From: Podarcis filfolensis | Taxonomy: Eukaryota | DNA: 64,000 nucleotides | Direction: 5' to 3' (one strand) | Assembly (NCBI GenBank): GCA_964270895.1 | Contig: OZ185435.1 | In this document: piece by piece, positions 24,837-62,088 of the stretch | Position numbering within the stretch: the stretch's first letter is position 1 | Layout of the letters: each line of letters starts with the position of its first letter | Program-made: the position numbers and the translations under genes | The notes under the pieces: generated by a model | The model's database searches: none | What the model was told of the DNA's origin: nothing | What the model saw: the letters and a program-made list of their open reading frames with translations, nothing else

Positions 24837-25800
24837 GGGCCGGGGGCTGTAGGAGGAGAGCGCAGGCCAGCCATGCTGTCCCGGAAGGGCATCATCCCAG
24901 AGGAGTATGTGCTGACCCGGCTGGCCGAGGATGTCCCGGATCCGTCCCGCTACCGCGCCCGGGAGAGGAGGGCCCGCTTCGTGGGCAAGAACGGCGCGTG
25001 CAATGTGGCCCACAAGAACATCCGCGAGCAGGGCCGCTTCCTGCAGGACGTCTTCACCACGCTGGTGGACCTCAAGTGGCCCCACACGCTCCTCATCTTC
25101 ACCATGTCCTTCCTGTGCAGCTGGCTGCTCTTCGCCATGGTCTGGTGGCTCATCGCCTTCGCGCACGGGGACCTCGACCAGAGCACCCGCCAGCTCCACC
25201 TGCAGCCGGGCGACGCCGCCGGGGGGGCGGAGGACTTCGTGCCCTGCGTGACCGACATCCGCTCCTTCACGTCGGCGTTCCTCTTCTCCATCGAGGTGCA
25301 GGTGACCATCGGCTTCGGCGGGCGCATGATGACCGAGGAGTGCCCCGCCGCCATCCTCATCCTCATCGTGCAGAACATCGTGGGCCTGGTGATCAACGCC
25401 ATCATGCTGGGCTGCATCTTCATGAAGACGGCCCAGGCGCACCGGCGCGCCGAGACGCTCATCTTCAGCAAGCACGCCGTGATCGCGCTCCGCCAGGGCA
25501 AGCTCTGCTTCATGCTGCGCGTGGGCGATCTGCGCAAGAGCATGATCATCAGCGCCACCATCCGCATGCAGGTGGTGAGGAAGACGGCCAGCCCCGAGGG
25601 GGAGGTGGTGCCCCTCCACCAGATCGACATCCAGATGGAGAACCCGGTAGGGGGCAACAGCATCTTCCTGGTCTCCCCGCTCATCATCTGCCACGTGATC
25701 GACAGGAACAGCCCTCTGTACGACGTGGCCCCCGACAACCTCCACCACCACGAGGATCTGGAAGTCATCGTCATCCTAGAAGGGGTGGTGGAAACCACGG
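24250..25800. promoter_or_regulatory. CpG island over the KCNJ11 promoter, leader and 5' two-thirds of the CDS; includes reverse CCAAT box (ATTGG 24657-24661) and GC boxes (about 24695-24712)
   Basis: Abrupt rise in GC and CpG density against the AT-rich flanks; boundaries approximate. Confidence 0.8.
24778..24852 (+). other. Upstream [11 protein letters not shown](A)11TGRGL containing (GCC)11 (24802-24834)
   Basis: GCG-ATG-G strong Kozak context; TAG at 24850-24852, 20 nt before the KCNJ11 ATG; preceded by a CAG-rich run (24752-24776). Translation not demonstrated. Confidence 0.55.
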
Positions 25801-26075
25801 GCATCACCACTCAAGCCAGGACGTCCTACTTGGCCGACGAGATCCTCTGGGGACAAAGGTTTGTGCCCATCGTGACCGAAGAGGATGGGCAGTACTCGGT
25901 AGACTACTCCAAGTTTGGCAACACTGTGAAGGTGCCCACCCCAAGCTGCACTGCCAGGCAACTGGAGGAAAACCAGAGCATCCTGGACAGCATCTCCTTC
26001 TCACCTAGGGGCACTATCAGGAAAAGGTCTGTCAGGTTAAAGCCCATGTTTTGCATATCCGATGAACCTTCCTGA
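24873..26075 (+). CDS. KCNJ11: Inward-rectifier K+ channel Kir6.2 (KATP pore subunit), intronless, 400 aa
   Basis: [20 protein letters not shown] start, TIGFGG filter, C-terminal RKR retention motif, single exon, immediately downstream of ABCC8. Confidence 0.98.
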
Positions 26076-37946: not shown

Positions 37947-38263
37947 TCAAAGTTCTAAATCAAAGGTTTTATCCAAGGTTTCATCATTTGCAACTACATA
38001 AACTTCACATTTGATTTCATATTTTTTCTTATCTTTTTCGGTTGTAATGATCACATACGAAATAAAACCAGATCCATCGCCACAATTTTCATTCTGTATT
38101 TCATCATCAACTGGATATACTCCGTTAAACCAGCAAACAATGGCATCCTCTGCTCTTATTCCAGGTACAAAACAGCGAAGAGTCACCTCGCCTGTCTTTG
38201 GGTTGCTGGTGACACATTCTATCTTCATAGGCTGAGCTGGTTCTTCAACGGGGGGCTTAGAAT
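37947..38263 (-). CDS. NCR3LG1: B7-H6-like exon 9: terminal post-TM Ig C1-like domain 5 and stop
   Basis: ctctctctag| acceptor, phase 1; VTLRCFVPG...IVCWF...IKCEVYV...LDKTFDLEL-TGA. The summed CDS of 2553 nt is in frame (850 aa plus stop). Confidence 0.8.
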
Positions 38264-39369
38264 CTAGAGAGAGGGAATAGGAAATTGAATAGGAAACTGC
38301 TCTTGAAGTACATACCTGGAAGAGGCATCTCGCTAACATTAAGCATCCCTGATTGTGATGTTCAGTTTCCAATCCTTTGCATATTTTCCTCAAGTCAGAT
38401 AATTTGAACTTTCTGTTCACATTGCATTATGTCTGTTCCCTACCCAGCCACTGCTTAGTGCTGTGAATGGAAGCTACAGTCAAGACATTGGCAATTAAGG
38501 ATTAAAAAGGAATAGCAAGGCACTGGGGAACTAGAGTGGTTGTAAGAATGACTGACAGCAGTGGAGTGTAATGGATTGCTGGCTGGAGTCAAAGTAAGTG
38601 ACAGCTGTTGAGAATCTGTTGAGGATGGAAGATAAAGAACTGAACCAGGACAGGAGAGTGAGGGAAAATGAGATGGAGAGAATAAACACCTAGGTAAAAG
38701 GATAGCTGGAAAGAGGGCAGTTATGCCAAGTCAGGATATTAAAACTCTTACTATTTGGGATGTCAGGTCCCTAAATAAATACAAGGTTACAGTTTTATCT
38801 TCAAGCCCCAATATGTAGTTTTGTCTGGATGGACTTTTGTTCAGTTAAGCATATATGAATGTCTTTCATATGTCTTCAGTATCTTTTATAGGTTGCTAGA
38901 GACACAGTTATTAAGATATTAATGTTGGCATATAAATTCATAAACTACTTGTTTTAAAACTAATGTTTCACATAGTTGTTTTGTCAAACCTGTTATTGTT
39001 TTATGATTTTTATGATTTTTAAAAACTATCCAGTGGTATATAAATATATTGTCATACATTAAGCAGAATAGGAATGGCGTAAATAGAAGCATGACATGAG
39101 GAACTCCTCTGCACCCTTTCCTGTTTCCTTGTGCATTTCAGAGGGCTGAGAGGAGTGGTCACTGTGGCCACAAATAGTGGCAGGCTTTTATGCCAAAAGA
39201 AAGTTTGCAGATCCCTGCGTACAAGTTTTACAGAATGCACTAAGTTGATCTTTCAGATCATCCCTTATGAAAATAATGTGCACGTTTAGAGTAACTTAAT
39301 GGTCTGGTTGAGATGTAATGATCTCACTTTAATAAATAATGGTTTATAAGGCAGAGTAAAGGTTGTCCA

Positions 39370-39503
39370 TGGTTGGACAGTGTTCTCGAAGCCACAAACA
39401 TGAGTCTGACCAAACTGCGGGAGGCAGTGGAAGATAGGAGTGCCTGGCGTGCTCTGGTCCATGGGGTCACGAAGAGTCGGACACGACTAAACGACTAAAC
39501 AAC
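39370..39503 (+). mobile_element. 5'-truncated Bov-B 3' end
   Basis: Same 3' sequence as the 36.4 kb copy; imperfect TSD aaaggttgtcca / aaagattgtcca. Confidence 0.85.
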
Positions 39504-40420
39504 AAAGATTGTCCAAGTGCTCTCTTCTCCCACTACCTCCTCCAAGAAACATCTAAACAGTTTTCTGATTTTAACTGGGACTACAAACCAGGATATGAAA
39601 CCACTGAGTCAATGTGTCATGTACCTGCATTTTACCTACACGTGAGGTGCAATACTCACTTAAACCAACATGGTTTTTGTTCACTGGTAAAGTAGACACT
39701 CCTTCAAGGCTATCAAAGTAACCTTGTTTAAAAGAAGAAATAACATATTAGGCCTTGGGCAGGCATCATGTCACGTAACAGAAATACTTACAGCAAAAAT
39801 GCTACTCAACTGAATCAACACGCTTTCAACTGCAATTAGCCAACTGCCTTCCAAGGGTAGCATTTGGGGGGTTGCAGTGGGAAGAGATACAGTCAGAGCA
39901 ATATTCATGGAAAAAATTCAAAATCTAGTTCTCTGATGAATTCAAGACAAAATTTCTAAAACCAGGTGTGTTGTAAGAGCATTATGTTGACTTTTGTATT
40001 CATAACAACCAGATACACTTGTCTTCTGAAGAATATTATTAAATATGAGAAAATCATAAGCTACCCAAAAGACTACAAAGCCATCTTTCAGCCTTGACCA
40101 AGGGTGTATCTACACACAGGGGGGGAAACGCTATAATTAAATTATAAATAAAATTGTTATAACAAAAGAAAAAACTCTACGTAAAACACATAGAAAAGTA
40201 TTGTGCTCTACAGTGCCACCTGGTGTTCCATGTTTATAATGCATTTAAAACACTGTTGTTTTTTTACTAATGTAGCTGAGTCCTAAGTAACGGAAGTGCT
40301 TAATTGAGAAGAGGAATCACCTTTTCCCCCATTAGCAGTGTTTTTTGGGGGGATATGTCTGAATCCCTTACATAAATTCTGTACATTCTGCGCTGAAAAC
40401 ATAAAAAAAAAAGTTCTTAC

Positions 40421-40726
40421 CTTTCCTTTCCCACACAAAGCTTTTTTCTTTAAAATCCTGTGTTGCTTGGTGAAAAACTTCACATCTGATTGTCTTTTTG
40501 GAGTCTCTTCCTTTTGGACTAAACTGTAATTTGCTTACAAAATAACCTAACTTGTTTTCTCCAATCTGAACGTTCCTGGGATTGTCTTCAGATATTTTTT
40601 TCCATTCTTCATACCATGTCACTTTTATGTTGCAAGGTGCAAAATTTGATACGACCGTTTCCAAAGAGATGCTCTCACTGTTTTGCATTGGTGTTGCCTT
40701 TATTTCAGACATCTCAGGGCGGTGAA
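40421..40726 (-). CDS. NCR3LG1: B7-H6-like exon 8: post-TM Ig C1-like domain 4
   Basis: 306 nt, phase 1-1, catgtag| and G|GTAAGA; VVSNFAPCNIKVTW...FVSKLQFSP...IRCEVFHQA. Confidence 0.82.
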
Positions 40727-41562
40727 CTACATGGGGAGGAAAGGAAAGGATGTACTTGAAGTGACAATACAAGACAACAGGAACATAAAAAGATGCCTTA
40801 TACCAAGTCAGTCCATTAATCCATCTAGTTCAGCGTTGTTTACAGTGTCTGGCAGCAGCTCTGCACAGTTTCAAGCAGGGGATATTTCCAGCCCTGCCTG
40901 GAAATGCTAGGGACTAAACCTGGGATATTCTACTGCCCTTCCCCAATGTGAATCTATTCTATAACTTTCCTCTAAAAAATACAGGAATTTTATGAAGGAT
41001 TTAAATGTGTCATTGTTTAAATCACACTTCAGATCAGCAGGGTTGCAAGGATATTCATCTTCAATGAATATAGATCCGAGAATATGGTTTTTGATTTTCT
41101 AAAAACTTGGGGTGAACTAGTAACATCAGTGCCTATGTGTGAACATATGGTGTGGTTTTTGTTTTAGTTTTTATTAGATTTACCTGATTTTTCTATCAGG
41201 GAATCTTCAGAACTACTAAATGGAAGTCTGCAAGAAAGTTTGGACCTTCATAAAACAAACAAAACTGGCAGATATTAGGGACACATGACACCTAGTAGAG
41301 ACATGGCTATACGGTACACCTATCAGTCAGAGTACACAAACATGTCAAACCTCCCTTGTTGCAAAGGGAACTGCTTTATATCATAATACTACATCGATCC
41401 TCAATCTAATATACATTTTATTTTATGCAAACCACTTAGACATTTTTACAATCACTTAACAACATTTTTAAAATTAAGTGGTTTACAAATTTTGTTAAAT
41501 AAACAAGCTCAAATTGCCATTTGCCTAAAGTTGAAAGAACCCAAAGGATTCTCAGTACGTAC

Positions 41563-41874
41563 CTGGGAGCTTTAGATACACATCTCTAATAATGGGCTTT
41601 TTCAGGTCGCCATATGTCACACTGAAAATAATGAACTTATTATGATCCAAAGCAGTTGGTATCAGCTGGAGCTCAGAAGACAACTTCAAGCAGCCATTTG
41701 AGTCTTTGACTGGCCCCTCTGTGACCACACCTTTACTTATTTCAATACCCCCATCGAGCCATTGAATATTTATGTTGCTAAGAAAGAAATCTGTGACTTT
41801 ACAGGTTAGAGACAATGTAGTTCCATATTTAGGATAATTTGGTTCACACGTAATATCTGTAACTTTGGGGTAAC
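41563..41874 (-). CDS. NCR3LG1: B7-H6-like exon 7: post-TM Ig C1-like domain 3
   Basis: 312 nt, phase 1-1, tttttag| and G|GTACGT; PKVTDI...LSLTCKVTDFFLSNINIQWL...LSSELQL. Confidence 0.85.
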
Positions 41875-43003
41875 CTAAAAAATGCAGATGCAGAGAAAAC
41901 AAACAATTGAAAATATTAGTTTAAATTCAAAGAATGCTGGTACATCTGGTATTGCAAAACAGTAAATCAGAAGTGACAAATGGCAGATGGGGTGTCACAT
42001 TAGTATGTTACAGCAAAAGCTAGCCTAGTGTCACTTTATAACACATATATCATGGCATAAACTTTCATGGACTACAGGCTACTTCATATGATGCATGAAC
42101 TCCTATCCTCAGGGGATACACACATGGATATATACACACAGTCTCTCTCAAAAAGAGCTAGAGATAGGTTTGGAAAAATTACAGTTGCTTATCCTTTCAC
42201 TCTCACTACAACCCTGGTTGAAATTAGAGGATAGAATGAGCAATTAACACCACCGTCTTGTCAAAACTACCAAGTTTGCCTGGTTTAGATGTTATGGCTT
42301 CTCCCAATGAACTCTGGGAGTCAGATCTTTTGTAAAATCACAGGAATCTCAAAAAACTACAAATTAAAAGCTTTGCAGATTTAATTCAAATCCGCACAAT
42401 ACGGTATATGGAGAAATGATAAGAGTACGCATATAATGGCAGGGGAGCATTGGCAGTCTAACATATTCTAACATATCTGACATACACACATATATAATTT
42501 GTTATTAAATGTATATGATTATACATGGCTGTGTTTTATTCTGGTTGGAATACAAAGTGTGCCATGTTTGACCTTTTGGACTGAAACAGATGAGAGCTTC
42601 GATTTCTCATTTGATTCATGTTTTAAATTGGCTGCACTATAATGCTTGTCATGTTTGCAATTTGCCACTAGCCGACACTATAATTTTCCTACAAAGATGC
42701 ACATATCAGCTATAAACTTGCTTTGCTGATTTCACCCAGAAAAACTTCTAAACTAATTTTATGAATGACTTGACACTTCTGTGCAAGGACTCTCTGAGTC
42801 ATGTTTTCCATGGGACAAACCCACGATAGCATCACCTACTGACAAAGAGATACAAGTGATCTCTTTCAGTACAAGTTATCAAAGACCCACAACAAATACA
42901 GATACAGGAAACAACTCCATTATGTATTTCCAGTTTTATATAAACTATTTAGACAGGAACAACAAGTAGTTGTTCATTGCACAAGAACTTGCTGAGTACT
43001 CAC

Positions 43004-43318
43004 CTTTTAACATGAGTGGGTAACTATGTCTTATAACTTTTTTACAATGGTTGATTTGAACAATAAAGTCTACTGCATGGTCTTCTGGTTGAGGTATAAA
43101 AGATACTCTGCTTTTCTTGCAATACAGATTTGATCCTGGGTCCAGTTGTGGCTCCTCTGTGTTACTTTTAGCATCCAAAGGCTCATTATTGCCTCTTAGC
43201 CAACAAACGTCACACTCCCGTGGGCAGAAATCTTCTACTAAACAAGATAATGTGATGAGTTTCCCACACTCTGGTACAGGAGGCTCACATTCAATTTTGG
43301 AGACTTTGGGAGTACATT
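43004..43318 (-). CDS. NCR3LG1: B7-H6-like exon 6: post-TM Ig C1-like domain 2 (Cys-rich)
   Basis: 315 nt, phase 1-1, tttacag| and G|GTGAGT; PKVSKI...LITLSCLVEDFCPRECDVCWLR. Confidence 0.85.
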
Positions 43319-43755
43319 CTGTAAATAAATAAATAGATAAATAAATGTATACATACCAAAAAAGTGATATTATTAGCAAGTAGAATGCAACTGGAGAAGA
43401 TAATAAGTATGGACTCTCTTTTGTCCACATGAATTTCTGATCTGAAGAAGGCAGGGAGTACACAATCCCGTGCAGGCCTTATACCATGAAATGCTTTAAA
43501 GGTCATCACTTCGCCCTTCGTACGGGCTCACAAGTTATAAGAAACTAGTCAAACTGAATGAGATTAAGAGAAATAATCTCCACACAAGCCACCTGTGCTG
43601 CTTTCCCATTTTATCATTCACTTTTTGTAGACTGATCAAAGAGTTTAGCTACAATCCTGCATTGTTTCCCTTTGTGTATCATCATTGGCAGCAGAAAGTA
43701 TCCCATTGCATTCATGCAGCTCTCTCACCTTTCATCTGTTGACAGAATTCTTATA

Positions 43756-43997
43756 CAGTGGTACCTCGGGTTACAGACGCTTCAGGTTACATACGCTTCA
43801 GGTTACAGACTCCGCTAACCCAGAAATAGTGCTTCAGGTTAAGAACTTTGCTTCAGGTTGAGAACAGAAATTGTGCTCTGGCGGCGCGGCGGCAGCAGGA
43901 GGCCCCATTAGCTAAAGTGGTGCTTCAGGTTAAGAACAGTTTCAGGTTAAGAATGGACCTCCAGAACAAATTAAGTACTTAACCCGAGGTACTACTG
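43756..43997. mobile_element. Tc1/mariner-type MITE, copy 4 (242 bp)
   Basis: Same TIR and TA TSD; ends 65 nt from the donor of B7-H6-like exon 5. Confidence 0.9.
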
Positions 43998-44061
43998 TAA
44001 TAGCCAGTGAAATATGTAGTATTATTCTAAGTGATCATTTCAGCCCATCTTTCCTACTTAC

Positions 44062-44499
44062 CTATGACTTTAAATGGTATTATTTCAAAAGACAAACGAT
44101 CTGGAAAGGCCTCATGTCTAACTTCAAGTATAAGTTCAAACTCCTCCAGATGCTTTACATCTGGAACTATGTTGACTTTGCAGTAAACGTCAAAAGTGCG
44201 CCTTTGTTTTACTTGCAAAGCTGGATCAAAGGTAAACATGGTCTTCAAAGTCTTTTCAAGATCAGAACTTTCTTCTTCTTTTCCAGTGATAAGAGGCATA
44301 TCTTCTCCGTGTTCAATATTGCTGCCTGTCATAGTATTCCAAGAGCATAGTTTCAGTTTTTCATTCCTGCTTTGGAGTTTTAAGAAAAAAACTATTTCTA
44401 AAGGCTTTGGACGAAAGCCTTGCAGCAGGAACACCACCAGTGCTTCTTCCAAATGTTTCAATTCCTTATTTGCAGTTGCTGAAAATATCCCTGGTTGAA
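44062..44499 (-). CDS. NCR3LG1: B7-H6-like exon 5: post-TM degenerate Ig C1-like domain 1 with a large internal insertion
   Basis: 438-nt stop-free exon, tttatag| acceptor and G|GTAAGT donor, phase 1-1; LVVFLLQGFRPKPLEI and LILEVRHEAF resemble C1 B/C and F strands. Confidence 0.75.
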
Positions 44500-46904
44500 C
44501 TATAAAGAGCAAAACAAAGAATTTCAGGTGTAGAAACTTGTAGCAGTGTTACAAGTGATACTATTAGAACAAGTCATCTGTAAGAGGAACATTCTTGCTG
44601 CAGTTTACAACTAAGCATTATTTTTCCTTTTTGTAATTATCACATTCAGTCTATTGCAAATGCTAGTGACTGCTACATGGTGAATAGCGATGTATGCAAG
44701 ATGCTGTATCATAGATCAAGTGGCACAGTCCCTATTCAGAGTGCTTGAAGTACAGATAAGGTAAAGCATAACTGGAAGAAAAAGACAGTCCTGGATGAAG
44801 CGTTGGCTCAGTGAGATTAGGAAGAGTTTATTTTTGAGGTTAGGTTCAGTTGAGTATAGCAACAGCCTTACTAAAGAAGCCAGTTCAACAAAGACGGTTT
44901 AAAGCTTTAAAGGGTTGGGGGTGATATGATAGAAAGCCAGAAGGTAGGAGCAGGGATTTTAATAAGATGTTTGCAGCAAATGAATTTGCACAAAGAATCA
45001 TTCTGATTTGGAGGATAATTCCTTCCATAATTCCTCTGTGGCAATAAGACACTGAATAGTGACAGTTCAGTGAACAAAAAACCTAACAGCTTAATGTATT
45101 GTATTAAGTTCCATGTTCTCTTAAGCTCCAAAATGCTGGGTTTTGCAGCTGTTAAAGGTCACACCCTCAACAGAGGTGTTATTTAGACAATATGGATGGA
45201 TACGCAGTAGATGTCCTATGTTGTGATTAGTTCCACCTTAAGCAGAAGCCACCATGATATGTTATGTGTACCCATTAACACAGAATGGATGGAAGTGTAC
45301 TGGCTATGTGCACCTTTCCCACAGAATAATAAGAGTTTAAAAGAACCTTATGGTGATGTGGGGTGCTATCTTCAATCTATAAATCTTGCTCTCTCTGTGT
45401 GTGCCCTGGAAGCTTCAGTAAAGTTGCTTAGCTCACCAACCCGAAACAGTTCTTGTTTTAAGCAGTTGTTTTACCTGACACACACAAAATACACGCTCTA
45501 TATTTACACACTATATACAGGTTGCACAAAGGCTTTTCTCTCTTTGGTCCCAGAGGGTTTTGTGTAATTCAAAATCCTTGCTGAGCAAAATCCACATGCA
45601 AGCCTTCTTTTCAGATGAGCTCTCCTCAAAGTGTTTCACAATGATCCATCCCTTCCTGGTAACAGCCACTGACCCACAACCAATGCTCTAATCCGAGCCC
45701 TTTTATACATATAGTTGCATGCTTACTAAGGTAGCCATATTTTGAAGAGCAACAAAGAGAATGCTATGACGACTCTCGTTTTAAATATCTCTACTATATG
45801 TAGGATATAGAAGCTGTGATATATTGCTGAGGGGGACAGGTGAAGAGAAGAGGAAAGCAAGTCTATGTCTCATCCAGAAAGTATAGCCAGAGACATTTGG
45901 GCATATTTAAAAAATCCACCCGGACAGAAATTTTACCCCTGAAAAAGAGGACGTGTCCTGGAATAAGAGGACACATGGCAACCAAATCTGCCCAGTAAAT
46001 TGATAAAGAAGTCAAATTGAGCCAGGTGCATTTTTGAAATGAATCAGAGTGAGACAGCTTTTCCCTCACTAATGAAATTAACACACTAGCTATATTCCTT
46101 AACACCTTAAAGGTCATTCAGTCCAACTCCCTGTTCAGTGCAGGGTAGTCGCGGATTAAGCATTCCTTCTTACTCCTTTTGTACATATCCCACCCAAGTA
46201 TTTTGGTTAGCTTTGTAGCCCTGAATTAAGAATCTTGCAGAGTGTGCTATTTCTGTATCATGTAGAATGAAGCAAAAGAGCTGAGAAAGAGTGCTTTATC
46301 TGTGACAGGGGCTTGGACTAAATGACCTTCAGGGTTTATTCCAGGACTTACTTTATGTGGATGTTATTGGTTGCTAGTTGAGCACTTGCAATGTCAAATA
46401 GTAGCTTCAGTTGTATAGACTCCATGAGTCTTTTCTAGTGAGCAGATAAATCTGGGGCATAGGGCCACCACTCTGTCACTGACAGCCATCCATCTCCAAG
46501 ATAATGCTGAAGCTAGAACTAACCAGTTAGGACCTCTTGCATGCAAAACAGATGTTCTATCACTGAGTTATGGCCTTTCCCCAATTGATTCAGCAAAGAA
46601 ATCTTAGCCACTTAAAAGAAAAATTAGTCAAAATTCTTAACCACAGGCAAGGAGATTTTTTGGTGCCTGGCGCACTGGCGCCTAGGATTTTTTGAATACT
46701 GTCATTTCAGACCTAAGTTTACCAAAGATTAAGATTTCACAAAAGTACTAATTTTACTTTAATAATAATGAATACGTGCATGTATTATGTTTCATATTAA
46801 TCTATTTTTGTAAACCACCCTTAACCACCTTTGATGAATAGTATAGAATTCTCTTAATTGAAAAAATCAAATAATCAATTAATTAAATGTTTCCCATTAC
46901 TTAC

Positions 46905-47000
46905 TTTTCTTAAAGTACATTATGTACAGAATCACAGGAATCACACCAAGTAATAATAAAACAAGTATCACAGCCAACCAGGTAAAATTTGGTGGTGGTT
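46905..47000 (-). CDS. NCR3LG1: B7-H6-like exon 4: transmembrane segment EPPPNFTWLAVILVLLLLGVIPVILYIMYFKK
   Basis: ctctctttacag| acceptor and A|GTAAGT donor; 96 nt, phase 1-1; about 23 hydrophobic residues followed by KK. Too short for the ORF track. Confidence 0.88.
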
Positions 47001-47149
47001 CTGTAAAGAGAGAGAAATTGTTCTTGTTACTTATCACACAAAATAGCAAAATGTTTCAGCCTTGTTGCAACCTTTTGATGAGAAGTAATATTTCATATTC
47101 AGCTACTCAATCGTGGCAAAGTTATTTTAGCCCCATTTATTCCAACTGC

Positions 47150-48150
47150 ACATAAGAAAAGTCCTGCTGGAGCAGCCTAAAGACTAATCTGGTCTAGCAT
47201 GACTATAAGGTTTCCAAACTGGACATAAAGACCTCTTATATTGTTGTTTGCCAGAAAGTTATACTGTATTCAGAGGCATGCTACCTCTGATTTTGGAGGT
47301 AGCCATTGGTGGGCTTACACTGTAAACCCATCTAAGCTAATGGCCATCAACAGACCACCACATGGCAGTGAATTCTGTAAGTTAAGCATATGTTGCATGA
47401 AAAAGTACTTCTTTTTGTCTGCCCTGAACCTCTCACCGGTCAACTTGACTGGATGATCCCAGATTGTGTTAATGGAGAACTAATTTCCATCTATATCACA
47501 CATAAAGGTAAAGGTAAAGGGACCCCTGACCATTAGGTCCAGTCATGGCCAACTCTGGGGTTGCGGCGCTCATCTCGCTTTATTGGCCGAGGGAGCCGGC
47601 GTACAGCTTCCGGGTCATGTGACCAGCATGACTAAGCCGCTTCTGGCGAACCAGAGCAGAGCTCGGAAACGCCATTTACCTTCCCGCCAGAGCGGTACCT
47701 ATGTATCTACTTGCACGTTTGACGTGTTTTCGAACTGCTAGGTTGGCAGGAGCAAGGACCAAGAAACGGGAGCTCACCCCGTCACGGGAATTCAAACCGT
47801 CAACCTTCTGATCAGCAAGTCGTAGGCTCTGTGGTTTAACCCACAGCACCACCCGCATCCCAGATAATTATATCACACATAATTTTATACAATTCTAACA
47901 TGTCCCTTCCTCATATTTGCCTTTTTAAAAAAAAACTAAAAAGCCCCAAGTGCCATAACCTTTTCTCACTAAGGAGTTGTTCCATCCCTAATATCATTTT
48001 TGGTTGCCCTTTTTGTGCACCTTTCCCAGCTCCACAATAATCTTTTTAAGATGCAGCAACTAGAACTGTGCACAGTATTCCCATAGATTTGTATAAAGGC
48101 ATTACAATATATTTTATCCCTTTCCTTGTGATGCCCTAGCATGGAAGTCC
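47150..48150 (-). mobile_element. Old CR1-like LINE 3' remnant interrupted by the Sauria SINE
   Basis: Begins acataagaaaagtcctgctgg (reversed CR1-type tail) and continues on both sides of the SINE; boundaries approximate. Confidence 0.6.
47503..47861 (-). mobile_element. Near full-length Sauria-type SINE with 14-bp TSD
   Basis: AAAGGT tail, tRNA-derived head (B-box-like ggaattcaaacc on the plus strand); tatatcacacataa at 47492-47505 and 47869-47882. Confidence 0.9.
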
Positions 48151-48390
48151 CAAAGACTAATGCATTTGTAAGTACAATATGAATCTTTGGAGAAAGAAGG
48201 CTACATTTCAGAACATAGGGCAGAATTAGTGGAAGGTGCTGAAGGCTCCAGGGTGTGTGGGCAAATATCCCCTCCCCTTCTGGATCAAAAGCCCCTACAC
48301 TCATGGAAGTACACCAGTTGGATGTGACCCACTATTATACACAAACACACACACACACACACAGGCAGAAAAGGTCAACAGAAGGAATAC

Positions 48391-48717
48391 CTGTTACTAT
48401 CAAAGTGGCATTGAAGGCCTGCCGTATGGAAAATGATTTGTGTCCCACAACACAACTATAGACATTTCCATTATCTTGTAAAGATGGTTGTAGCCCCAGT
48501 TTACTGGTTACATTGAAAGTGCCATCTCCATTTTTCACAGGTACCCCTGTGCAAATATCATCTGCAGGTACAACTTCGTTATTCCCGCGTTCAGATTTCT
48601 TCTCCCAATGAACCTCAATCAAAAGAGGATAGAATTTATTCACTGTGCATGACAGGGTCTTCTCCTTGCCGTCTTCTAGTTCAACTGTCCTGGGAAACAG
48701 CTTTACTGAAGGTTGAG
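48391..48717 (-). CDS. NCR3LG1: B7-H6-like exon 3: extracellular Ig C1-set domain
   Basis: 327 nt, phase 1-1; AQPSV...LSCTVNKFYP..IEVHW...DGTFNVTSKL...YSCVVGH; both Cys kept; sequons NVT and NAT. Confidence 0.9.
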
Positions 48718-49959
48718 CTGCATGGAGATAATCAAAAGTGTCATTGTTTCTGTTTTTACTGCATTTTTATACAGTTTTTCAGACAAAAGCTGGTTGAAAG
48801 TGAAGTGAAAGTCATAGTTCATACTCCTGATTTCTCAGAAGGACATGGTCTAAATTAAAAACCTGGGTTGAGGGTTGTTTAATTAGAAGGAGATGGCTGG
48901 GGCAAGAGGCACAGAAGAGAAGTCCTGAAGAAGGTGTTTTGTGGGTCAAGAGGAGCTGTGTGCTATGAGTGGGAAGGGGGGAAGCCTACTAAGAAGGCTG
49001 GTCAAGAGTCTTGGTGGTAACAGAAGTGAACAAGAAGGAACTTGGGGGAAAATAATGGTGGAGGCAGAGAGCTAAAGAAAGGAGTCCAGGAGAATACCAA
49101 AATTGGGCAAAACTAGAGTTACAAGAGACTCTGCACAACTGGATGGAAAAAGCAGAAAGGTAAATGACGGACCTGAAGGGACCTGGTTTATTTTTCCCCA
49201 CCATTGATATGAAGGTATTTTTTTATTCCTCTGCTTTGTTATTTTTGTTGCTATTTATTTATCATTCTATTGTTTAAGTAGTTAAGCTGCCTTCATAGCA
49301 TTTTGACCCTGAAGGATACAGAACAAATTTTACAGGCATACATATATACATACATATATATAGGATCATTACAATTTAGAACCTAGACCCCGAGGAGATA
49401 ATTATGTCAGTGGCAGCTTCTATTGTTAGTGTAGCTTTTGTGATCTGGCAATTCTAAAAGCGCAGTGAGGGCAAAGAAGCAATGGGAGTGGACTTAACTT
49501 TCAAAGATTCATTTGAACTAACCAGCCAATTCTTTGGCTTCAAGTGTTTCAAATATATGTGATAATATCAGTCTGTCGAATAGAGCTCAGGTGTTGAGTG
49601 ACAACACCAAAAGAAGGCTACTAAGACACAAGGAGGAGATAGTAGCATGCAGAAGTAAAACAACAACTACAGGGGGAAATCTAAGGAGGCACCCCCCCCC
49701 CAAAAAAAGAGCATGCTTAGTAGCCACAAAATACTGACAACCTGTTGGGGATGGGGAGCATGAAAAATTGGGGTGATGAAGAGAGAATGCAATGGGGTAT
49801 CTTGGATACCACCTGAGTGGCTGGAGGCCTTAATAGGAGCACTCCACAATACAACGTTTTATGGCAGGTCCCACTTGGTATATAAGAAATTGCTTAGCAA
49901 AACTTTTAATGAGTCAGCTATACCACTCCATAACACAAAGTGACTTTTTTTTGAAGAGA

Positions 49960-50128
49960 TACACTTCTTAAGAGCTGTCTGACATTAGAACAGACTCCCT
50001 CAGAAGGTAGCAGACACTCCTTCATTGAAAGTTTTAAAGCAAAGATTGGATAGCCATCTGCCATGTATGATCTAGTAGAGATTCCCTTGGGATCCCTTCC
50101 AACTCTACAATTCTAGAGTTCTATGATT
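49960..50128 (+). mobile_element. CR1 3' end
   Basis: ggatagccatctg...ccttccaactctacaattctagagttctatgattc tail. Confidence 0.6.
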
Positions 50129-50487
50129 CCCAAGCAGGTGATTTATAGTTAAGAAATTTTGGTAGAAGTTTAACACTTTCCTTTCCTCTCACTGTACCAA
50201 ACCACCCCTACACGGTTCCAAACCTGCATCTCGGGGGGGGGGGGGCTGAAGCAGCTTGGAATGTATTTTGATGCCTGGGGGAAAGGATTAAACATGCTTC
50301 TCCCACCCCCATAGTTCACTGTTCTAAATTACTGTCTTGCAAAGTGACTTTTCTCTAAAGATGGGTGATATCACATACATTTCCTTATATAATGCTTAGT
50401 TAGACCTTAAAGCTACTGGGAAATTCTGAAATGTACAAGTTCGTTCTCTGTAAGTTTTCTACAAACTTGTGCAACATAAATACTTAC

Positions 50488-50838
50488 CAATTAGCTCTAC
50501 AACAGTGGTTCCTTCATTTGAATCTGGGGTAACAGTCACAGAACATATGTATATTCCTTCTTCACTAATCTGTATTTGGGGGAGGGAAAGTGCAGCATTG
50601 CCTTTTATCAGTTCACTTTCATCCATTCTTGCACCGTTTCTATAAGATGTAGGCACTCCAGAAACAATGGTGTACACTATATTTTCCGCTTCCTTGGAAG
50701 AAGGCTTCCAATACCACTCAACAGCTATTTTTGCGATCTTTAGCTCTGGAGTACTGTATTCAGAGATCTCACATGGTATCATCACATCTGTATCCAAGAC
50801 TGCCACCATCCGACTTTCCATTGTCACTTTCAGAGATT
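50488..50838 (-). CDS. NCR3LG1: B7-H6-like exon 2: Ig V-set domain
   Basis: 351 nt, phase 1-1; VMIPC...IAVEWYW...KGNAALSLPQIQISEEGIYICSVTVTP, resembling B7-H6 [33 protein letters not shown] donor. Confidence 0.9.
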
Positions 50839-51135
50839 CTTCGTAAAGAAAAAAAATAGCATTATTGCAAATAGTCTTTTGACCTTTCTAACAGTAGAAG
50901 GCTATGATTCATCACTGCCCATATTAAATGTATGGGAAACAAAATAGCTTTTTGTTTCCTATTGAATGGTCGGTGATCCTTTTCTGTGGCACTTAATACC
51001 ATTTTGACACCTGATTTTATACCTTATTTTGAAAGAGACCACAATTACCTTTATTTTGATACCAAAATAGGCCCAATCGGTTAAAAAATAAGTGAAACAG
51101 GAGGTTTTTTTCTGACACAGAAATTGCATTAGCCT

Positions 51136-51494
51136 AAAAAGGTAAAGGACCCCTGACAGTTAAGTCCATTTGCGAACGACTCTGGGGTTGCGGCGCTCAT
51201 CTCGCTTTACTGGCCAAGGGAGCTGGCTTTGTCCACAGGCACTTTTCCCAGGTCATGTAGCCAGCATGACTAAGCCACTTCTGGTGAAACCAGAGCAGCG
51301 CACGGAAACACTGTTTATTTTCCCGCCGGAGCGGTACCTATTTATCTTCTTGCACTTTGACGTGCTTTTGAACTGCTAGGTTGGCAGGACCTGGGACCAA
51401 GCAACGGGAGCTCACCCTGTCGCGGGGATTCGAACCACCAACCTTCTGATTGGCAAGCCCTGGCTCTGTGGTTTAGACCACAGCACCACCCGCC
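51136..51494 (-). mobile_element. Sauria-type SINE
   Basis: Co-linear with the 47503-47861 copy. Confidence 0.88.
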
Positions 51495-52377
51495 TAAATT
51501 GCGTGAAAATTTAAATTTTAAAAAAATTATCCTGCCCCCAATTTTAAACCAAAAAGTATTTTAAAAATAATTTGAGGTTATCTCATAGGTATCTACACAT
51601 AACCAAAAAAAAAAAAAACCTGAAGAAAATATAAGTTGTGAGAGCACATGGCACCAGGTGATTTGGTGTGGAATGACCCTTTTAGAAATATAGGGTTGGA
51701 TTCAAGTAACCTGATCCTCCAGTAGAAGCCAGCACCAGGGTTCCTGGTAGTAAAATGGGACCAAAAAACAAAAACAAAAACCATAGTCTCCTATATTTCA
51801 CCTGTGAACTTTGCTCTGATCTTTAACACTGGGGAATGGGCAGTCAATAATACTTTAGGATAGACAATGGCAAAATGTTGACGATCCTTTTCTTTTTCTA
51901 TATTTCATTTATGTTTGTGTAGCCTATATGGTTTTTAGCAATGAAAAGATCAAGCTGATGTCCTGTCACTAACTGTTATTAGGCTGTTGCTCTGGCTTGA
52001 GGGTTATTTTAATTTAGCGACTGGTTTTTTTCTTTCTCTTTCTCAACTTGAACTGTTTTTCTGGGATTCACAGTGCCATCTAGAGGCCAGAGAATTTCCT
52101 GTTGCTGAGTTAGGGCTTCTGGAAAGTCAACAGCATGCCAAAGGGCCAAATTTTAGCCAGGAATGACGGCTTGTTCATTTTTACACAAATTGCCAAAACT
52201 CCTGATGGGGTTACACTCCCTCTGAAGGGAGGTGCTTCTGGATTCACTGCTGTCACCTGAGGCTCAGGTGCCCCCAGTGGCACAGAGTGCCTTCCATCAG
52301 CTCCTGCTGCTGGCCCACCTGCACCCCCTGTCTGGACAGGTAAAGCCTAACTTCTGTTGCCTATGCTCTAGTAACCT

Positions 52378-53082
52378 CTAGGTTAGATGACTGCAACATG
52401 TTATAAGTGGGAGTGCCTCTGAGGATGGTTCAGAAACTCCAGGTGGTGCTCACCAGAGCAAGACAGTTTGAGCATATTATACTGATCCTGGCCCAACTGC
52501 ACTGACTGCCAATTAGTTTCTGGGCCCAGTTGGAAGTGCTGGTTTTGACCTACAAAGCCTTAAATGGCTCAGGACTGAAATACCTCAAGGACTACCTATG
52601 CCCACATGAACCAACCCAAACCCTATGATTGTCATTTGTGGCCCTTCTTCGTGTGCCCCTCTGTGAGAAGTCTGGAGGTTGGCAACAGGCCGTTTCTGTG
52701 GTGGTTCCCCACTTGTAGAATGCTCTCCCCAGGAAGGCTTGCCTGGTGCCTTTGTGACATATCTTTAGGTGCCAGGCTATGGGCATAGCCAGGATTTGTG
52801 GGGGGGCAGGACTTTTGTTAGGGGGCAGAACCAACGCGATTGCTCAGTTAAGCATTTCTATTGTTTTACCCCCTCCTTGGCTACGTCCAAGCGCCAGGCA
52901 AAAACATTCCTCTTCTCCCACGCCTTTGGCTATTTGAACCATCTATATGACCTGTGAGGGGGTTATTGCTTTAGTTTGTTACTATGTTATGTATTTTTGT
53001 GTTTTTATATTGTAAGCCGCTCTGTGATCCTCGGATGAAGGGCAGTACAATATAAAAAATTAGTTAATAAATAATAATAATA
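52378..53082 (+). mobile_element. L2 LINE 3' fragment with (AAT)n tail
   Basis: Degenerate ORF2 C-terminal motifs (LHWLP, VLVLTYKALNG type) and an aataaataataataa end. Confidence 0.75.
52778..52891. mobile_element. hAT-type MITE nested in an L2 fragment
   Basis: Imperfect TIR TATGGGCATAGCC / GGCTACGTCCAAG; near-TSD tgccaggc / cgccaggc. Confidence 0.65.
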
Positions 53083-53734
53083 ACGTGCCCCCTGTGGATC
53101 CAGACGGTAACGCAGCTGGTTGGCGGATTTAACACTCCGCTCTCAGGGATTTCTCCTCAAGCGCTAGAAATTAGCACACCGAGGGGGAAACTCCGCTTGA
53201 AACCAGCTGGTGGTTTCTCCCGCTTCCCCAATGCAAGCTGAAGAGGCCGGGTGTCCAGTCTGGATTCCGTTAAGGGTTTCTCTCTCCTTCCACACGCGTT
53301 ATGGCTCCAATCCGTGCCCCAGAAATACGTAGAGAAAACTCCCTAGTCTCCAAAGCACAACTGTATGTCGAGCCTAGTGGGCACCATTTCCGCGAGGAAG
53401 AGGCGCGAGGAGGAGCTGGGCTTTCCACGGAGGAGCAATTACAAAGCGCCCCCTTCCTCCTCCTCTGCTCCAAACAAGTGTCCCCCTTAGTCCGCCTTAC
53501 TCTCGTTAGTTAGCGTCCACCTCGCCCCTTGTCACAAAACTCGCTTCTCCAAGAGAGGGGGAGCGGGTGGCTCGCTTGTTTCCACTTGTTTCCCCCGGGG
53601 CGAGAGCGACCTCCGCGCTCTCTCCCCCAAGCAGGAGCCGAACTCACGGCGCGAGTCGCCCTGCGGCTGCCGAGCGGCCTTTAGAAGCAGCAGCAGCTGC
53701 AGCAGCAGCGACGCCCCTCGCCCGCTCTGTTTAC

Positions 53735-53825
53735 CTGCCGGCTGGAGGACGACGACGCCACAGAGGAACACCGAAAAGCCGTGCAGGAGGCACCTGCGGG
53801 CCGCCAACCCACCTCCCCAGTCCAT
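53735..53825 (-). CDS. NCR3LG1: B7-H6-like gene exon 1: signal peptide MDWGGGLAARRCLLHGFSVFLCGVVVLQPA
   Basis: ATG in CCCATGG context inside a CpG island; hydrophobic stretch; phase-1 donor GCAG|GTAAAC matches the next exon; symbol from synteny between KCNJ11 and NUCB2. Confidence 0.75.
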
Positions 53826-58129: not shown

Positions 58130-58254
58130 TTAAGGGTGAGACTGAACGTGATCTGATCCTGCAGCTGTTTCTTGTACTGGTATGCTTCCTGGTGGTAAAG
58201 GCTGACTGCCTCCCGCAGGATGATTTTGAACATTTCCAACTGGTTGTGATGCAG
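58130..58254 (-). CDS. NUCB2: NUCB2 putative last coding exon, P/G/Q-rich tail PASQPVGNVQNHPAGGSQPLPPGSIPVQETAAGSDHVQSHP*
   Basis: Strong acceptor tttgtgttacag|, phase 1 matches exon 13, open to TAA. Confidence 0.75.
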
Positions 58255-59018
58255 CTGTAACACAAAATACGAAAAACAAAGGTTAGTTCTGTTGAACAAT
58301 TACCTGGTAATCCAAATCTCAGAAAGTGTGGTTTTACATATTATAGTAGACTCAAATTTTACATGGGGGTTACATTACAGGGGGTTATGCATAAAGCTGA
58401 AATCACATATAGTCAAAACGTCCCCAAAGGTTATTAGAGCAGAACTCCACATATTTATGGTACTAGATATTTTTTTCCTTGCATAAAATCACCTTTCAGA
58501 GAACAAAGAAGGTCTGCAGTATTTGCTTGTTCATTTATGTGCAGTAAGATTTTATAGCTCCATTTTCAATGGTATTTTCAATTTCAATGGTATTTTCCAT
58601 TTTCAATGGCTCTCTTTTATGAAAATGCATCTTTCCCCCCCTCTCACATACAAAGACACACTTGCCCAAATTATATCTCTCTCTTTCATGTACAGCTGCT
58701 AAGAGATATATTTGGAGTTTGTATGAAAGGTGCCCCTATTTCATAGTAAAACATGATAGATTCTTTCATTTGAATTATCTGGCAAGGAAAGTATTTGGGT
58801 AGGGGTTTAGTTTCAGGCATCCAAGTGTTCAAACATGTTACATTCCAATCTAATGGGTTGGAAGGCTCCTTCTCTTATTTGCAGTAGAATATTAAGTGCA
58901 AAGCTATAAATTTGGTTCTGAATCGCACTGAGGGCATAAATAGTTTTTCTCACAAGCAATGAACACCATCATCAATAATATGTGTGTGTGTGAGAAAGAG
59001 ATTAATTAATTTACATAC

Positions 59019-59100
59019 GTGGCTGGAATTTCAGTTCTCCACCCGGTCCCGAAGGAGGATGTCCTTGCTGTAACTTCTTCTGTTCCATTTGTTGGACAGC
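59019..59100 (-). CDS. NUCB2: NUCB2 exon 13 equivalent
   Basis: AVQQMEQKKLQQGHPPSGPGGELKFQP; 82 nt; C|GTATGT. Confidence 0.95.
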
Positions 59101-59186
59101 CTGTTGGGCAGTTACAAACGTACATGGAATGAAATGGAAAATAGGTAATCCAAGGTGTATCGGGGTGTTAATTTCATGCAATAAAG

Positions 59187-59187
<1 letters not shown>

Positions 59188-59230
<43 letters not shown>
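59188..59230. repeat. (TA)n microsatellite in a NUCB2 intron
   Basis: Direct inspection. Confidence 0.95.
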
Positions 59231-59232
<2 letters not shown>

Positions 59233-59445
59233 TTGAATATGAACATCCATATAGTTCTTGTGTATCACAGTAAAGTCTGCAACAAAATGCCTTCTTAAAT
59301 AAACTCAGCTTTGCATGGATTCTTCTTTTCTCTGGAACAAGTCCTCCCAAATCCAATAATCTAGTTCAGTACTGTGCAACATGCAGTAACTTTACAGTTC
59401 TTTAACACAGAATATCACCAGCACTTTATACTGCTGCTAAAAAAA

Positions 59446-59580: not shown

Positions 59581-59729
59581 GTCTGAGCAGCAGACCAAAC
59601 TAACATGCATTCCAAAGACAGTATACTTTCAGAACAAGAAATGATAATTTGTTCTGTTCTTACTAAACAATAAATACAATGAATTCCGTATCTATAACCA
59701 AAGGAAATTTGCAGCTATTCAGATGGTAC

Positions 59730-59900
59730 CTGCTGGAGTTCTTGTCTCTGAGCTTGAAGGTGGTCGTGTTGCCTCTGTAGTTCTTCTTTCCTTTTCTGAA
59801 GTTCTAGTGCTTGCTTGTTCAGTTCATCTTCTTGCTGGGAAATGTGACTTTCAAATTCCTTCAGATCCTCTTCAGTGAAGACCTGTTGTTGGTCCAGGGT
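59730..59900 (-). CDS. NUCB2: NUCB2 exon 12 equivalent (leucine-zipper coiled coil)
   Basis: TLDQQQVFTEEDLKEF...LQKRKEELQRQHDHLQAQRQELQQ; 171 nt. Confidence 0.96.

Positions 59901-61880: not shown

Positions 61881-61882
<2 letters not shown>

Positions 61883-61922
<40 letters not shown>
61883..61922. repeat. (GT)n microsatellite in a NUCB2 intron
   Basis: Direct inspection. Confidence 0.95.
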
Positions 61923-61925
<3 letters not shown>

Positions 61926-61995
61926 AGATGAATGTGGTAACAAAAGGGTTTTGCCTACTACAATTATTTATAAAAGAGTGATGTTTTGGCCTCAC

Positions 61996-62088
61996 CTCAT
62001 TCATGACATGTTCTCTCATTCGTAGCCTCTCTTCTTCCATTTCTACCATGTCATCTTCTTCATTTTTGGGATCATAGACTTTCTCTAG
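61996..62088 (-). CDS. NUCB2: NUCB2 exon 10 equivalent (acidic region)
   Basis: [31 protein letters not shown]; 93 nt; canonical AG/GT. Confidence 0.97.

Follow-up and report, generated by a model that had tools for sequence, protein, structure and literature searches.

B7-H6 (NCR3LG1) is a ligand of NKp30 that is displayed on stressed and tumour cells as an immune "kill-me" flag, and work on it has been almost wholly limited to humans. The human protein consists of a signal peptide, an IgV and an IgC1 domain and a single transmembrane (TM) helix, followed by a tail described as Gag-related, with ITIM/SH2/SH3-type motifs; its gene adjoins KCNJ11, in convergent orientation, on the NUCB2 side. 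In the related butyrophilins, such as BTN3A1, a B7-related V-C ectodomain is combined with a folded intracellular B30.2 sensor, and in integrin beta-4 extracellular-type modules (FnIII, Calx-beta) form a long cytoplasmic scaffold whose location and partners have been shown experimentally. Titin and obscurin contain cytosolic, disulfide-free Ig sandwiches of the I-set, with hydrophobic residues at the canonical Cys sites. To our knowledge, C1-set domains are otherwise found only outside the cytosol. In Ig heavy chains, and in the shark UrIg2 chain (VJ, nine C1 domains and a TM), every C1 domain precedes the TM (PMC12227049).

Within the window, the whole stretch of 64,000 nucleotides that was analysed, lies a gene that is probably the orthologue of NCR3LG1/B7-H6 from a lacertid (Podarcis-like) lizard and retains the ancestral 'long' form. 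In the best explanation its main product is a single-pass type I protein, probably with a cytosolic tail.

Structure and identity of the gene

Nine minus-strand exons (Table 1) splice to 2553 nt, corresponding to 850 codons and a TGA without internal stops, and encode in order a signal peptide, an IgV domain, an IgC1 domain, one TM and five Ig-like domains. All nine-exon junctions are GT-AG and in phase 1, with good polypyrimidine tracts and donors that are mostly GTAAGT or GTGAGT. The splicing confirms the nine phase-1 exons and 850-aa ORF of a previous sequence-only reading, which had, however, overlooked a 63-nt exon between exons 8 and 9 that brings the likely product to 10 exons and 871 aa. 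This mini-exon was located by tblastn of the Lacerta protein, occurs in RefSeq models of Lacerta and Podarcis as well, and has an open frame and the splice sites ...cttttaaacaag/GT (acceptor) and A/gtgagt (donor; slashes mark exon boundaries). Two AATAAA signals are found 561 and 1275 nt downstream of exon 9.

Table 1. Coordinates of the B7-H6 exons and of the neighbouring genes in the window
Feature	Position	Strand	Description
Exon 1	53735..53825	minus	ATG and signal peptide (30 codons + 1 nt), donor CAG/gtaaac
Exon 2	50488..50838	minus	IgV; Pfam V-set 34.2 bits
Exon 3	48391..48717	minus	ectodomain IgC1; Pfam C1-set 57.6 bits; Cys-Trp-Cys intact
Exon 4	46905..47000	minus	stalk, single TM helix (Kyte-Doolittle 3.15), KK stop-transfer; phase 1-1
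Exon 5	44062..44499	minus	tail domain T1, 146-aa Ig-like sandwich with disordered acidic loop
Exon 6	43004..43318	minus	tail C1-set domain, class T4; Pfam C1-set 28.5 bits
Exon 7	41563..41874	minus	tail C1-set domain, class T5; Pfam C1-set 41.7 bits
Exon 8	40421..40726	minus	tail C1-set domain, class T6; Pfam C1-set 33.5 bits
Mini-exon between exons 8 and 9	39660..39722	minus	63 nt, phase 1-1; disordered Ser/Thr/Asn-rich linker
Exon 9 (10th)	37947..38263	minus	last tail domain: Cys-Trp-Cys, conserved A-strand Cys, then TGA
KCNJ11	24870..26072	plus	Pfam IRK and IRK_C
NUCB2-like exons	58.1-62 kb	minus	coiled-coil; recognised by eye only

The assignment to B7-H6 was borne out by the ectodomain, whose best solved relative is human B7-H6 (PDB chains 6yjp/3pv6/4zso, E 7e-37, the next being B7-H3 at 5e-24, in one search direction); human B7-H6 is also the top PDB sequence match of the IgV domain (E 7e-12). 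The product of exon 1 is 80% identical to the N-terminus of Lacerta agilis NCR3LG1, and the protein shares 97% identity with a RefSeq model from Podarcis raffonei. The B7-type layout of signal peptide, IgV, IgC and single TM, common to this gene and human B7-H6, is apparent from Pfam, Kyte-Doolittle hydropathy and an AlphaFold2 (AF2) model of the 97%-identical Podarcis protein. The position between KCNJ11 and NUCB2, likewise proposed earlier, agrees with the human locus, KCNJ11 being convergent with the B7-H6 gene and the NUCB2-like exons lying upstream of it.

Fold and conservation of the tail domains

Whereas the human tail comprises about 170 aa, some 580 aa follow the TM in the lizard protein, and instead of the short Ig-free tail of described B7 members they form a linker and five folded Ig domains of C1 origin (other species outside the mammals have 5-8). 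The presence of five Ig-like domains beyond the TM, as first proposed, is supported by Pfam for exons 6, 7 and 8, which exceed the C1-set cut-off of 21 bits, and by family HMM and AF2 for exons 5 and 9; the latter two give no Pfam match and 14 bits, respectively, and are also Ig-like sandwiches (exon 9, family HMM 59 bits). Modelled alone, T1 reaches a pLDDT of 86 and a pTM of 0.81, and its Foldseek matches are Ig domains; an ESM Atlas feature search with T1 gave nothing meaningful. The AF2 model of the Podarcis orthologue shows seven confident sandwiches and one helix (residues 268-285), with pLDDT values of 85-93 for the five tail domains and below 50 for the linker (746-772). The top PDB sequence matches of the tail domains are IgA/IgG/IgM constant domains and UrIg2, with Ig heavy-chain constant domains nearest to T5.

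The canonical B-F Cys pair and C-strand Trp are complete only in the last tail domain. At the Cys-Trp-Cys positions T1 has F-F-L, Phe replacing both the B-strand Cys and the C-strand Trp, T4 has C-W-V and T5 C-W-F, with Val and Phe in place of the F-strand Cys, and T6 has T-W-C, with Thr in place of the B-strand Cys. The patterns are conserved as CW[MVI] from sharks to lizards (T4), as CWF (T5) and as [IVT]WC in all species (T6). These three domains have lacked one canonical Cys ever since the common ancestor of sharks and tetrapods, its partner being conserved at 95-100%. T2 and T3 retain the canonical pair with 100% conservation, the last domain does so in most cases, and the Cys-Trp-Cys of the ectodomain C1 is present in all species examined.

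The sequence-only reading had placed the architecture in a reptile system, but it is no reptile novelty: RefSeq predictions with V-C1-TM and 5-8 C1-like domains were found in chimaera, sharks, rays, coelacanth, frogs, salamanders, turtles, crocodilians and squamates, in more than 40 species. This distribution of predicted proteins indicates that the long Ig-tailed B7-H6 is the ancestral gnathostome form and not specific to reptiles. T1 directly follows the TM in proteins of 770-1180 aa retrieved by phmmer, the last tail domain is a conserved C-terminal domain from sharks to lizards, and the TM exon with its basic flank is conserved in every species, over more than 400 My. At all depths of divergence, tail and ectodomain show about the same degree of conservation, as in the Latimeria-Callorhinchus comparison (38% versus 39%). 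The Callorhinchus UniProt entry V9K7L7 (1079 aa), which we take to be derived from de novo assembled polyA transcripts, includes TM and tail, and the kiwi model retains V-C1-TM and half of T1, so that T1 and the TM share one reading frame there too. In the full-text literature searched, which did not include the two papers closest to the subject, by Flajnik et al. 2012 (PMC3709836) and Ohta & Flajnik 2015 (PMC4594805), no account of such a tail in B7-H6 outside the mammals was found, so an earlier description is possible.

Two ancestral tail domains were lost in lacertids, and no remnants of them were found elsewhere in the window. Together with a dN/dS of about 0.99 for the tail as a whole when the window is compared with Lacerta agilis, and the lack of a canonical Cys in four of the five tail domains, this loss could suggest that exons 5-9 are decaying, functionless relics of duplicated C1 exons that are open only by chance. 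However, where 10.2 frameshifts would be expected in the lacertid tail exons from the rate of indels in introns, there are none (P 3.6e-5), neither of the two lacertids compared has a stop in them, exon 6 is clearly under purifying selection (pN 0.020), and the pN of T1 (0.128) lies above the neutral rate measured in introns (0.0565), pointing to selection rather than drift. All five domains are, moreover, modelled as folded, and the frameshift and stop test, combined with the shark-to-reptile conservation, makes such pseudo-exons so improbable that we consider this explanation effectively refuted. Judged from these comparisons, the lacertid tail ORF is clearly maintained by selection.

Membrane topology and isoforms

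Beyond the signal peptide, no segment other than the TM is strongly hydrophobic, each orthologue has a single TM followed by basic residues, and no second TM that would return the tail to the lumen was detected in the lizard protein or in about 45 orthologues, in agreement with the sequence-only reading. With a cleaved signal and a single TM, a product that contains the TM should have its five tail Ig domains in the cytosol, a position that follows from the single TM rather than being proven. Indirect support is given by the unpaired half-cystines of T4-T6, kept since sharks, which may be signs of a reducing environment, and by N-glycan sequons, which over 28 species are enriched in the ectodomains (79 observed, 55.6 expected) and at chance level in the tails (113 versus 117.7), a contrast that would favour a cytosolic tail. 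Only this contrast is usable: sequon depletion as such was dropped as a sign of the cytosol, the tails being at chance level, and the 0 sequons of the lizard tail against 2.9 expected are a weak indication. Amino-acid composition is ambiguous as topology evidence, since the tail is richer than the ectodomain in Cys (3.1% versus 2.2%) and also in His. The C-terminal '-DLEL' was rejected as an ER-retrieval signal because, by eye, it departs from the KDEL-type pattern.

The TM exon is in phase 1-1 and can be skipped in frame, and since all exons are in phase 1 a soluble all-Ig isoform is possible. The annotated isoforms Bombina X2, Hemitrygon X6 and Varanus X2 lack precisely the TM exon, and Lepidochelys X6 lacks both TM and T1; the isoforms Alligator X2 and Podarcis X2/X3, also considered, differ at the N-terminus and not at the TM. 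The earlier proposal of a cytosol-facing tail thus retains its single-TM logic, but the same domains may also be secreted. It could even be that transcripts with exons 5-9 leave out the TM exon as a rule, yielding a soluble V-C1-(C1-like)5 protein with all Ig domains luminal or extracellular, and that mRNAs with both TM and tail are minor or artefacts of 'longest ORF' models. The fully kept Cys pairs of T2 and T3, the mostly kept pair of the last domain and the high Cys content of the tail would fit such an oxidising compartment, as would the usual location of C1-set domains. Still, we consider predominant secretion rather unlikely, given the retention of the TM exon and basic flank in every species, the lone half-cystines at 95-100% in T4-T6, unusual for secreted proteins, and the sequon contrast. 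Most annotated isoforms, including all those checked from Podarcis, Zootoca and turtles, keep the TM with the tail, and in kiwi the TM was kept even though the gene was shortened.

Protein-database searches and contig look-ups returned no lizard transcript across the TM-T1 (exon 4-exon 5) junction, the Logan contigs L003 and L004 being genomic. A salamander polyA transcript (L002, 3.5 kb, with a polyA signal) extends from T1 to the last domain without the TM exon at its 5' end; its first 85 nt, ahead of the T1 exon, are non-TM sequence containing an in-frame stop. This start, the stop that read-through of the exon 4 donor would meet after two codons, and short turtle 'NCR3LG1-like' models that end just past 'KKIPP' could indicate two units fused by annotation, namely a short membrane B7-H6 and a signal-less, soluble, tail-only cytosolic protein from an intron 4 promoter. 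We find this improbable: intron 4 contains no leader-like exon with a credible donor, T1 lacks a conserved initiator Met at its start, and the exon 4 donor (AAA/gtaagt) and the acceptor of exon 5 are both strong sites in matching phase. The fused form was, furthermore, modelled independently in the more than 40 species, and probably occurs in the de novo shark transcript, and intron retention may be all that lies behind the 5' end of L002. A downstream gene with its own leader was discarded on the same ground, as no combination of ATG, hydrophobic peptide and credible phase-1 donor is present in intron 4.

Possible roles and related designs

For the membrane-bound form with a cytosolic tail, we propose that the signal peptide would place the IgV-IgC1 unit, a predicted NKp30-ligand-type module, outside the cell, that the TM helix and its KK flank would stop transfer, and that the five remaining C1-derived Ig-fold domains and the disordered linker would be made and folded in the cytosol. 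The tail might then be a folded intracellular docking or sensing array, coupling the state of the cell interior to display, clustering or turnover of the ectodomain, by analogy with the butyrophilin B30.2 domain, and skipping of the TM exon may in addition give the soluble all-Ig isoform annotated in other species. A role of the tail as scaffold, sensor or decoy, as suggested previously, is pure conjecture. More tentatively, and as something possible rather than probable, C1-set domains may have been cytosolic for more than 400 My as the ancestral B7-H6 tail, the array sensing or docking stress or pathogen factors and controlling NKp30-ligand display; birds and mammals would have lost or replaced it, and the burst of change in lacertid T1 would reflect intracellular conflict.

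As in butyrophilins, such a tail could report the cell interior to a lymphocyte receptor ('inside-out'), and this is the mechanism that we favour for it. Pfam detects no B30.2/PRY-SPRY domain in the exons of the lizard gene, whose intracellular modules are C1-like, and the resemblance is thus one of working and not of membership. The integrin beta-4 tail would be a precedent for a long cytoplasmic scaffold of extracellular-type modules, but belongs to another fold family with no sequence relation, and the location of the lizard tail is read from sequence.

If the ancestral B7-H6 has a conserved cytoplasmic Ig array, cytosolic use of C1-set domains would be seen for the first time, which would suggest that B7-H6 was originally an inside-out reporter, like butyrophilins, and that the mammalian tail replaced an older device. 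If it is the secreted isoform that matters, species outside the mammals would possess a long, soluble chain of the NKp30-ligand type, likewise undescribed. The orthologues from shark, frog, turtle, alligator and lizard offer a direct experimental handle, with clear predictions on topology and isoforms.

In C1-set kinship, exon-per-domain organisation and phase-1 structure, the lizard tail agrees with Ig heavy chains and UrIg2. In contrast to these, the lizard TM exon lies between the first C1 domain and the other five, and most tail domains are without one canonical Cys, whereas the C1 domains of Ig heavy chains and UrIg2 retain the disulfide. With hydrophobic residues at canonical Cys sites, T1 and T4-T6 resemble instead the Ig sandwiches of titin and obscurin, although the lizard tail domains score as C1-set and not I-set, and are part of a membrane immune ligand.

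Gene model and genomic setting

The B7-H6 gene itself is already known from public gene predictions, many of them named NCR3LG1. The protein encoded in the window is 96.9% identical to XP_053248709.1 of Podarcis raffonei and about 95.5% identical to the NCR3LG1 models of Podarcis muralis and P. lilfordi, and among solved structures the best match to its ectodomain (IgV and IgC1) is human B7-H6 (E 7e-37), with B7-H3 far behind (5e-24). The sequence-only reading had joined nine exons, all in phase 1, into one ORF of 850 aa, and these exons are correct: they have GT-AG borders with strong polypyrimidine tracts and mostly GTAAGT or GTGAGT donors, each junction splits a codon after its first base, and once spliced they give 2553 nt and 850 codons without internal stops. 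It had missed, however, an additional 63-nt exon, uncovered by tblastn with the Lacerta agilis protein, which has a good acceptor and a GTGAGT donor, codes for a linker joining exons 8 and 9, and is also included in the Podarcis RefSeq models. The full product is likely encoded by 10 exons and 871 aa long. The window is free of N runs.

Pfam identifies a V-set domain in exon 2 (34 bits) and C1-set domains in exon 3 (57.6 bits) and in exons 6, 7 and 8 (28.5, 41.7 and 33.5 bits, for a cut-off of 21 bits); exon 9 reaches only 14 bits, and the 146-aa exon 5 has no Pfam match. Apart from the signal, exon 4 is the sole strongly hydrophobic stretch (Kyte-Doolittle 3.15), and is followed by KK. AlphaFold2 (36-sequence alignment) gives the domain encoded by exon 5, T1, nine strands in an Ig-like sandwich and an acidic loop that is disordered (pLDDT 86, pTM 0.81). 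Foldseek retrieves only Ig domains for T1, with TM-scores around 0.6, and the T1 profile shows weak similarity to C1 domains of Ig, TCR and beta-2-microglobulin over their A-B-C part. For exon 7, the nearest solved sequences come from the constant domains of Ig heavy chains and from shark UrIg2. The model of the full Podarcis protein presents seven confident beta-sandwiches and one helix, at residues 268-285, corresponding to the TM; residues 746-772, encoded by the 63-nt exon, form a disordered linker.

KCNJ11 lies tail to tail with the B7-H6 gene, and exons for a NUCB2-like coiled coil and C-terminus, resembling the 3' part of NUCB2, are found upstream of B7-H6 on the same strand; they were recognized by eye, and Pfam was uninformative. 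This arrangement agrees with the human gene order NUCB2-NCR3LG1-KCNJ11. The NUCB2-like last exon matches at 100% identity the final 41 aa of a 297-aa Podarcis raffonei RefSeq protein annotated as 'NCR3LG1-like' (P0114), whose residues 1-256 correspond to the B7-H6 signal-V-C1. Given the arrangement in the window, no linear transcript could have this exon order, which points either to a duplication in Podarcis raffonei or to a chimeric or back-spliced model.

Features of the B7-H6 locus and its neighbours, in window coordinates
Feature	Position	Strand	Remarks
Stretch upstream of KCNJ11	24-26 kb		very GC-rich (63% GC), rich in Arg and Ala repeats
KCNJ11 (Kir6.2) ORF	24870-26072	+	intronless; Pfam IRK and IRK_C at 24.9-26.1 kb
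Additional 63-nt exon	39722-39660	-	phase 1-1
Exon 5 (T1)	44062-44499	-	compared with L001:10232-10669 (Lacerta agilis locus)
(TG)n microsatellite	48341-48365	-	intron 3, ~25 nt downstream of exon 3 donor
NUCB2-like exons	58.1-62 kb	-	coiled coil and C-terminus
NUCB2-like last exon	58133-58255	-	phase-1 acceptor; stop at 58130-58132
NUCB2-like ORF	59011-59268	-	
NUCB2-like ORF	59715-60062	-	
NUCB2-like ORF	61813-62049	-	

Distribution and maintenance of the Ig tail

A phmmer search with exon 5 alone against 1.84 billion representatives returned 26 proteins, many of them of 770-1180 aa and matching at residues about 290-435, right behind a TM. With species names taken from cluster look-ups and from a second search with the alligator tail, long-tailed proteins were identified in squamates (Lacerta, Zootoca, Podarcis, Pogona, Pantherophis, Varanus, Rhineura, several geckos and skinks), crocodilians (Alligator, Gavialis), many turtles, amphibians (Ambystoma, Lissotriton, Pleurodeles, Xenopus, Bombina, Rhinophrynus and other frogs), Latimeria, and cartilaginous fishes (Callorhinchus, with several paralogues, sharks and rays). 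The tail is thus present from cartilaginous fishes to squamates, and its initial placement in a reptile NKp30-ligand-type system was too narrow. An iterated family HMM counts 7 or 8 tail domains in cartilaginous fishes, coelacanth and amphibians, 6 in crocodilians, turtles and geckos, and 5 in lacertids, which are without the alligator domain 423-524. No long-tailed protein was found in birds, mammals or teleosts by these searches, which reach proteins of similar length only. In the kiwi Apteryx rowi, NCR3LG1 isoform X2 (P0094, 310 aa) comprises V-C1-TM and the first half of T1 before a stop, with the T1 B-strand Cys replaced by Asn, and its end resembles the leftover of a truncated avian Ig tail.

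Multigene B7H6 clusters have been reported for sharks and frogs, and the paralogues observed here agree with this: a single 15.6-Mb contig of Callorhinchus milii carries several long-tailed paralogues of 1106-1309 aa (P0008, P0011, P0021, P0026 and cluster members), and Xenopus, Mixophyes and Lissotriton likewise have several long-tailed proteins each.

Ectodomain and tail are conserved about equally at every depth in four pairwise comparisons, with identities of 64% and 60%, respectively, between Alligator and Chelonoidis, 43% and 39% between Alligator and Latimeria, 39% and 38% between Latimeria and Callorhinchus, and 51% and 51% between Callorhinchus and Heptranchias. At shorter range, 5.65% of aligned bases differ between the introns of the window and those of Lacerta agilis, and indels occur at 7.75 per kb, 79% of them not multiples of three, whereas the 1.67 kb of tail exons show two indels, both in frame, and no stops, that is, no frameshifts versus 10.2 expected (P 3.6e-5). 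In the same comparison dN/dS is 0.26 for the ectodomain and 0.99, though heterogeneous, for the whole tail, within which exon 6 is constrained (pN 0.020, below the intron rate, P 0.005). The absence of frameshifts and stops from the tail exons, together with the constraint on exon 6, indicates that the tail is maintained. That it is a decaying relic is effectively excluded by its deep conservation and by the lack of frameshifts and stops.

Side of the membrane and isoforms

In all family members a single TM comes after the ectodomain C1, with basic residues next and a conserved '(K/R)K-(I/V)-P-P' that opens T1. The single-TM topology of the sequence-only reading stands, as a second hydrophobic segment was looked for and is absent from every family member, so that the tail of any TM-containing product must be cytosolic. 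The best-supported reading is that long-form B7-H6 is a type I ligand with an ancestral tail of serially arranged C1-derived Ig domains on the cytosolic side, and with an optional soluble isoform produced by skipping of the TM exon.

Two further patterns lend this placement indirect support at the sequence level. The ectodomain C1 keeps Cys-Trp-Cys in all species, and the tail has a class-specific cysteine pattern traced to the shark-tetrapod ancestor: T1 is missing the F-strand Cys, T4 (exon 6) has C-W-[M/V/I], T5 (exon 7) C-W-F (C-W-C in amphibians), and T6 (exon 8) [I/V/T]-W-C, with the remaining half-cystines 95-100% conserved. Unpaired core cysteines are usually selected against in secreted proteins, and half-cystines that stay unpaired over hundreds of millions of years would be expected in a place without disulfide formation. 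In addition, N-glycan sequons are enriched in the ectodomain (79 observed versus 55.6 expected) but at chance in the tail (113 versus 117.7), counted over 28 species that are non-independent samples. In the tail encoded in the window itself, sequons are missing altogether and domains behind the TM have lost disulfide pairs. On the other hand, several features run counter to a cytosolic tail: the canonical Cys pairs of T2 and T3 are preserved wherever these domains occur, the last domain mostly retains its own pair and has an invariant extra A-strand Cys, and Cys is more frequent in the tail (3.1%) than in the ectodomain (2.2%). The extra A-strand Cys, in the motif I-x-C-x-P, recurs in T4 and the last domain, where it is 100% conserved (columns 903 and 1344 of alignment A3; window exons 6 and 9), and is also found in window exon 7; an inter-domain bond, an inter-chain bond and metal binding are candidate roles.

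The main rival explanation is that the tail functions only in a secreted isoform. Every exon is phase 1-1, so leaving out any one of them preserves the reading frame, and RefSeq isoforms lacking exactly the TM exon are annotated in Bombina bombina (X2), Hemitrygon akajei (X6) and Varanus komodoensis (X2), while in Lepidochelys kempii X6 both the TM exon and T1 are absent. Such TM-skipped isoforms would be secreted, and all of their Ig domains would lie outside the cell. The TM is retained in all Podarcis, Zootoca and turtle isoforms checked. The Callorhinchus entry V9K7L7 (1079 aa) contains both TM and tail; its sequence was not found in the contig index. Its probable source is the set of polyA transcripts that the elephant shark project assembled de novo (PMC3964593).

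A reading of the locus as two genes is less likely. In a salamander run, a spliced 3.5-kb contig ending with a polyA signal (L002, Logan SRR10305542) extends from T1 through the last domain, and starts 85 nt upstream of T1 with non-TM sequence containing an in-frame stop, which may represent a retained intron 4 or an internal promoter or start yielding a tail-only protein. Positions 1-131 of this contig, inside which the stop lies, differ from both the TM exon and the C1 exon. Contig look-ups retrieved no cDNA-type contig for lizards.

Possible role of the tail and rapid change of T1

Ig domains that follow the TM in non-mammalian B7-H6 are nowhere mentioned in the full-text literature covered, a partial set with the likeliest sources outside it, nor is the Ig tail mentioned in the accessible parts of reviews and evolutionary papers. 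If its cytosolic placement is confirmed, the tail will be of high interest. We infer that it could dock or sense partners inside the cell and regulate display of the ligand. A model for such a function is offered by the butyrophilins, which are related to B7 and carry an intracellular B30.2 sensor, and a parallel by integrin beta-4, in which extracellular-type modules serve as a cytoplasmic scaffold.

In lacertids, T1 appears to be under positive selection, judging from the window and Lacerta agilis sequences: pN is 0.128, against 0.0565 for introns (P 4e-7), with a pS of 0.065, so that amino-acid change is about twice the intron base change. This fast change would fit a conflict with pathogen factors. 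T1 is also the part most divergent between the window and Podarcis raffonei; outside lacertids its rate is not unusually high.
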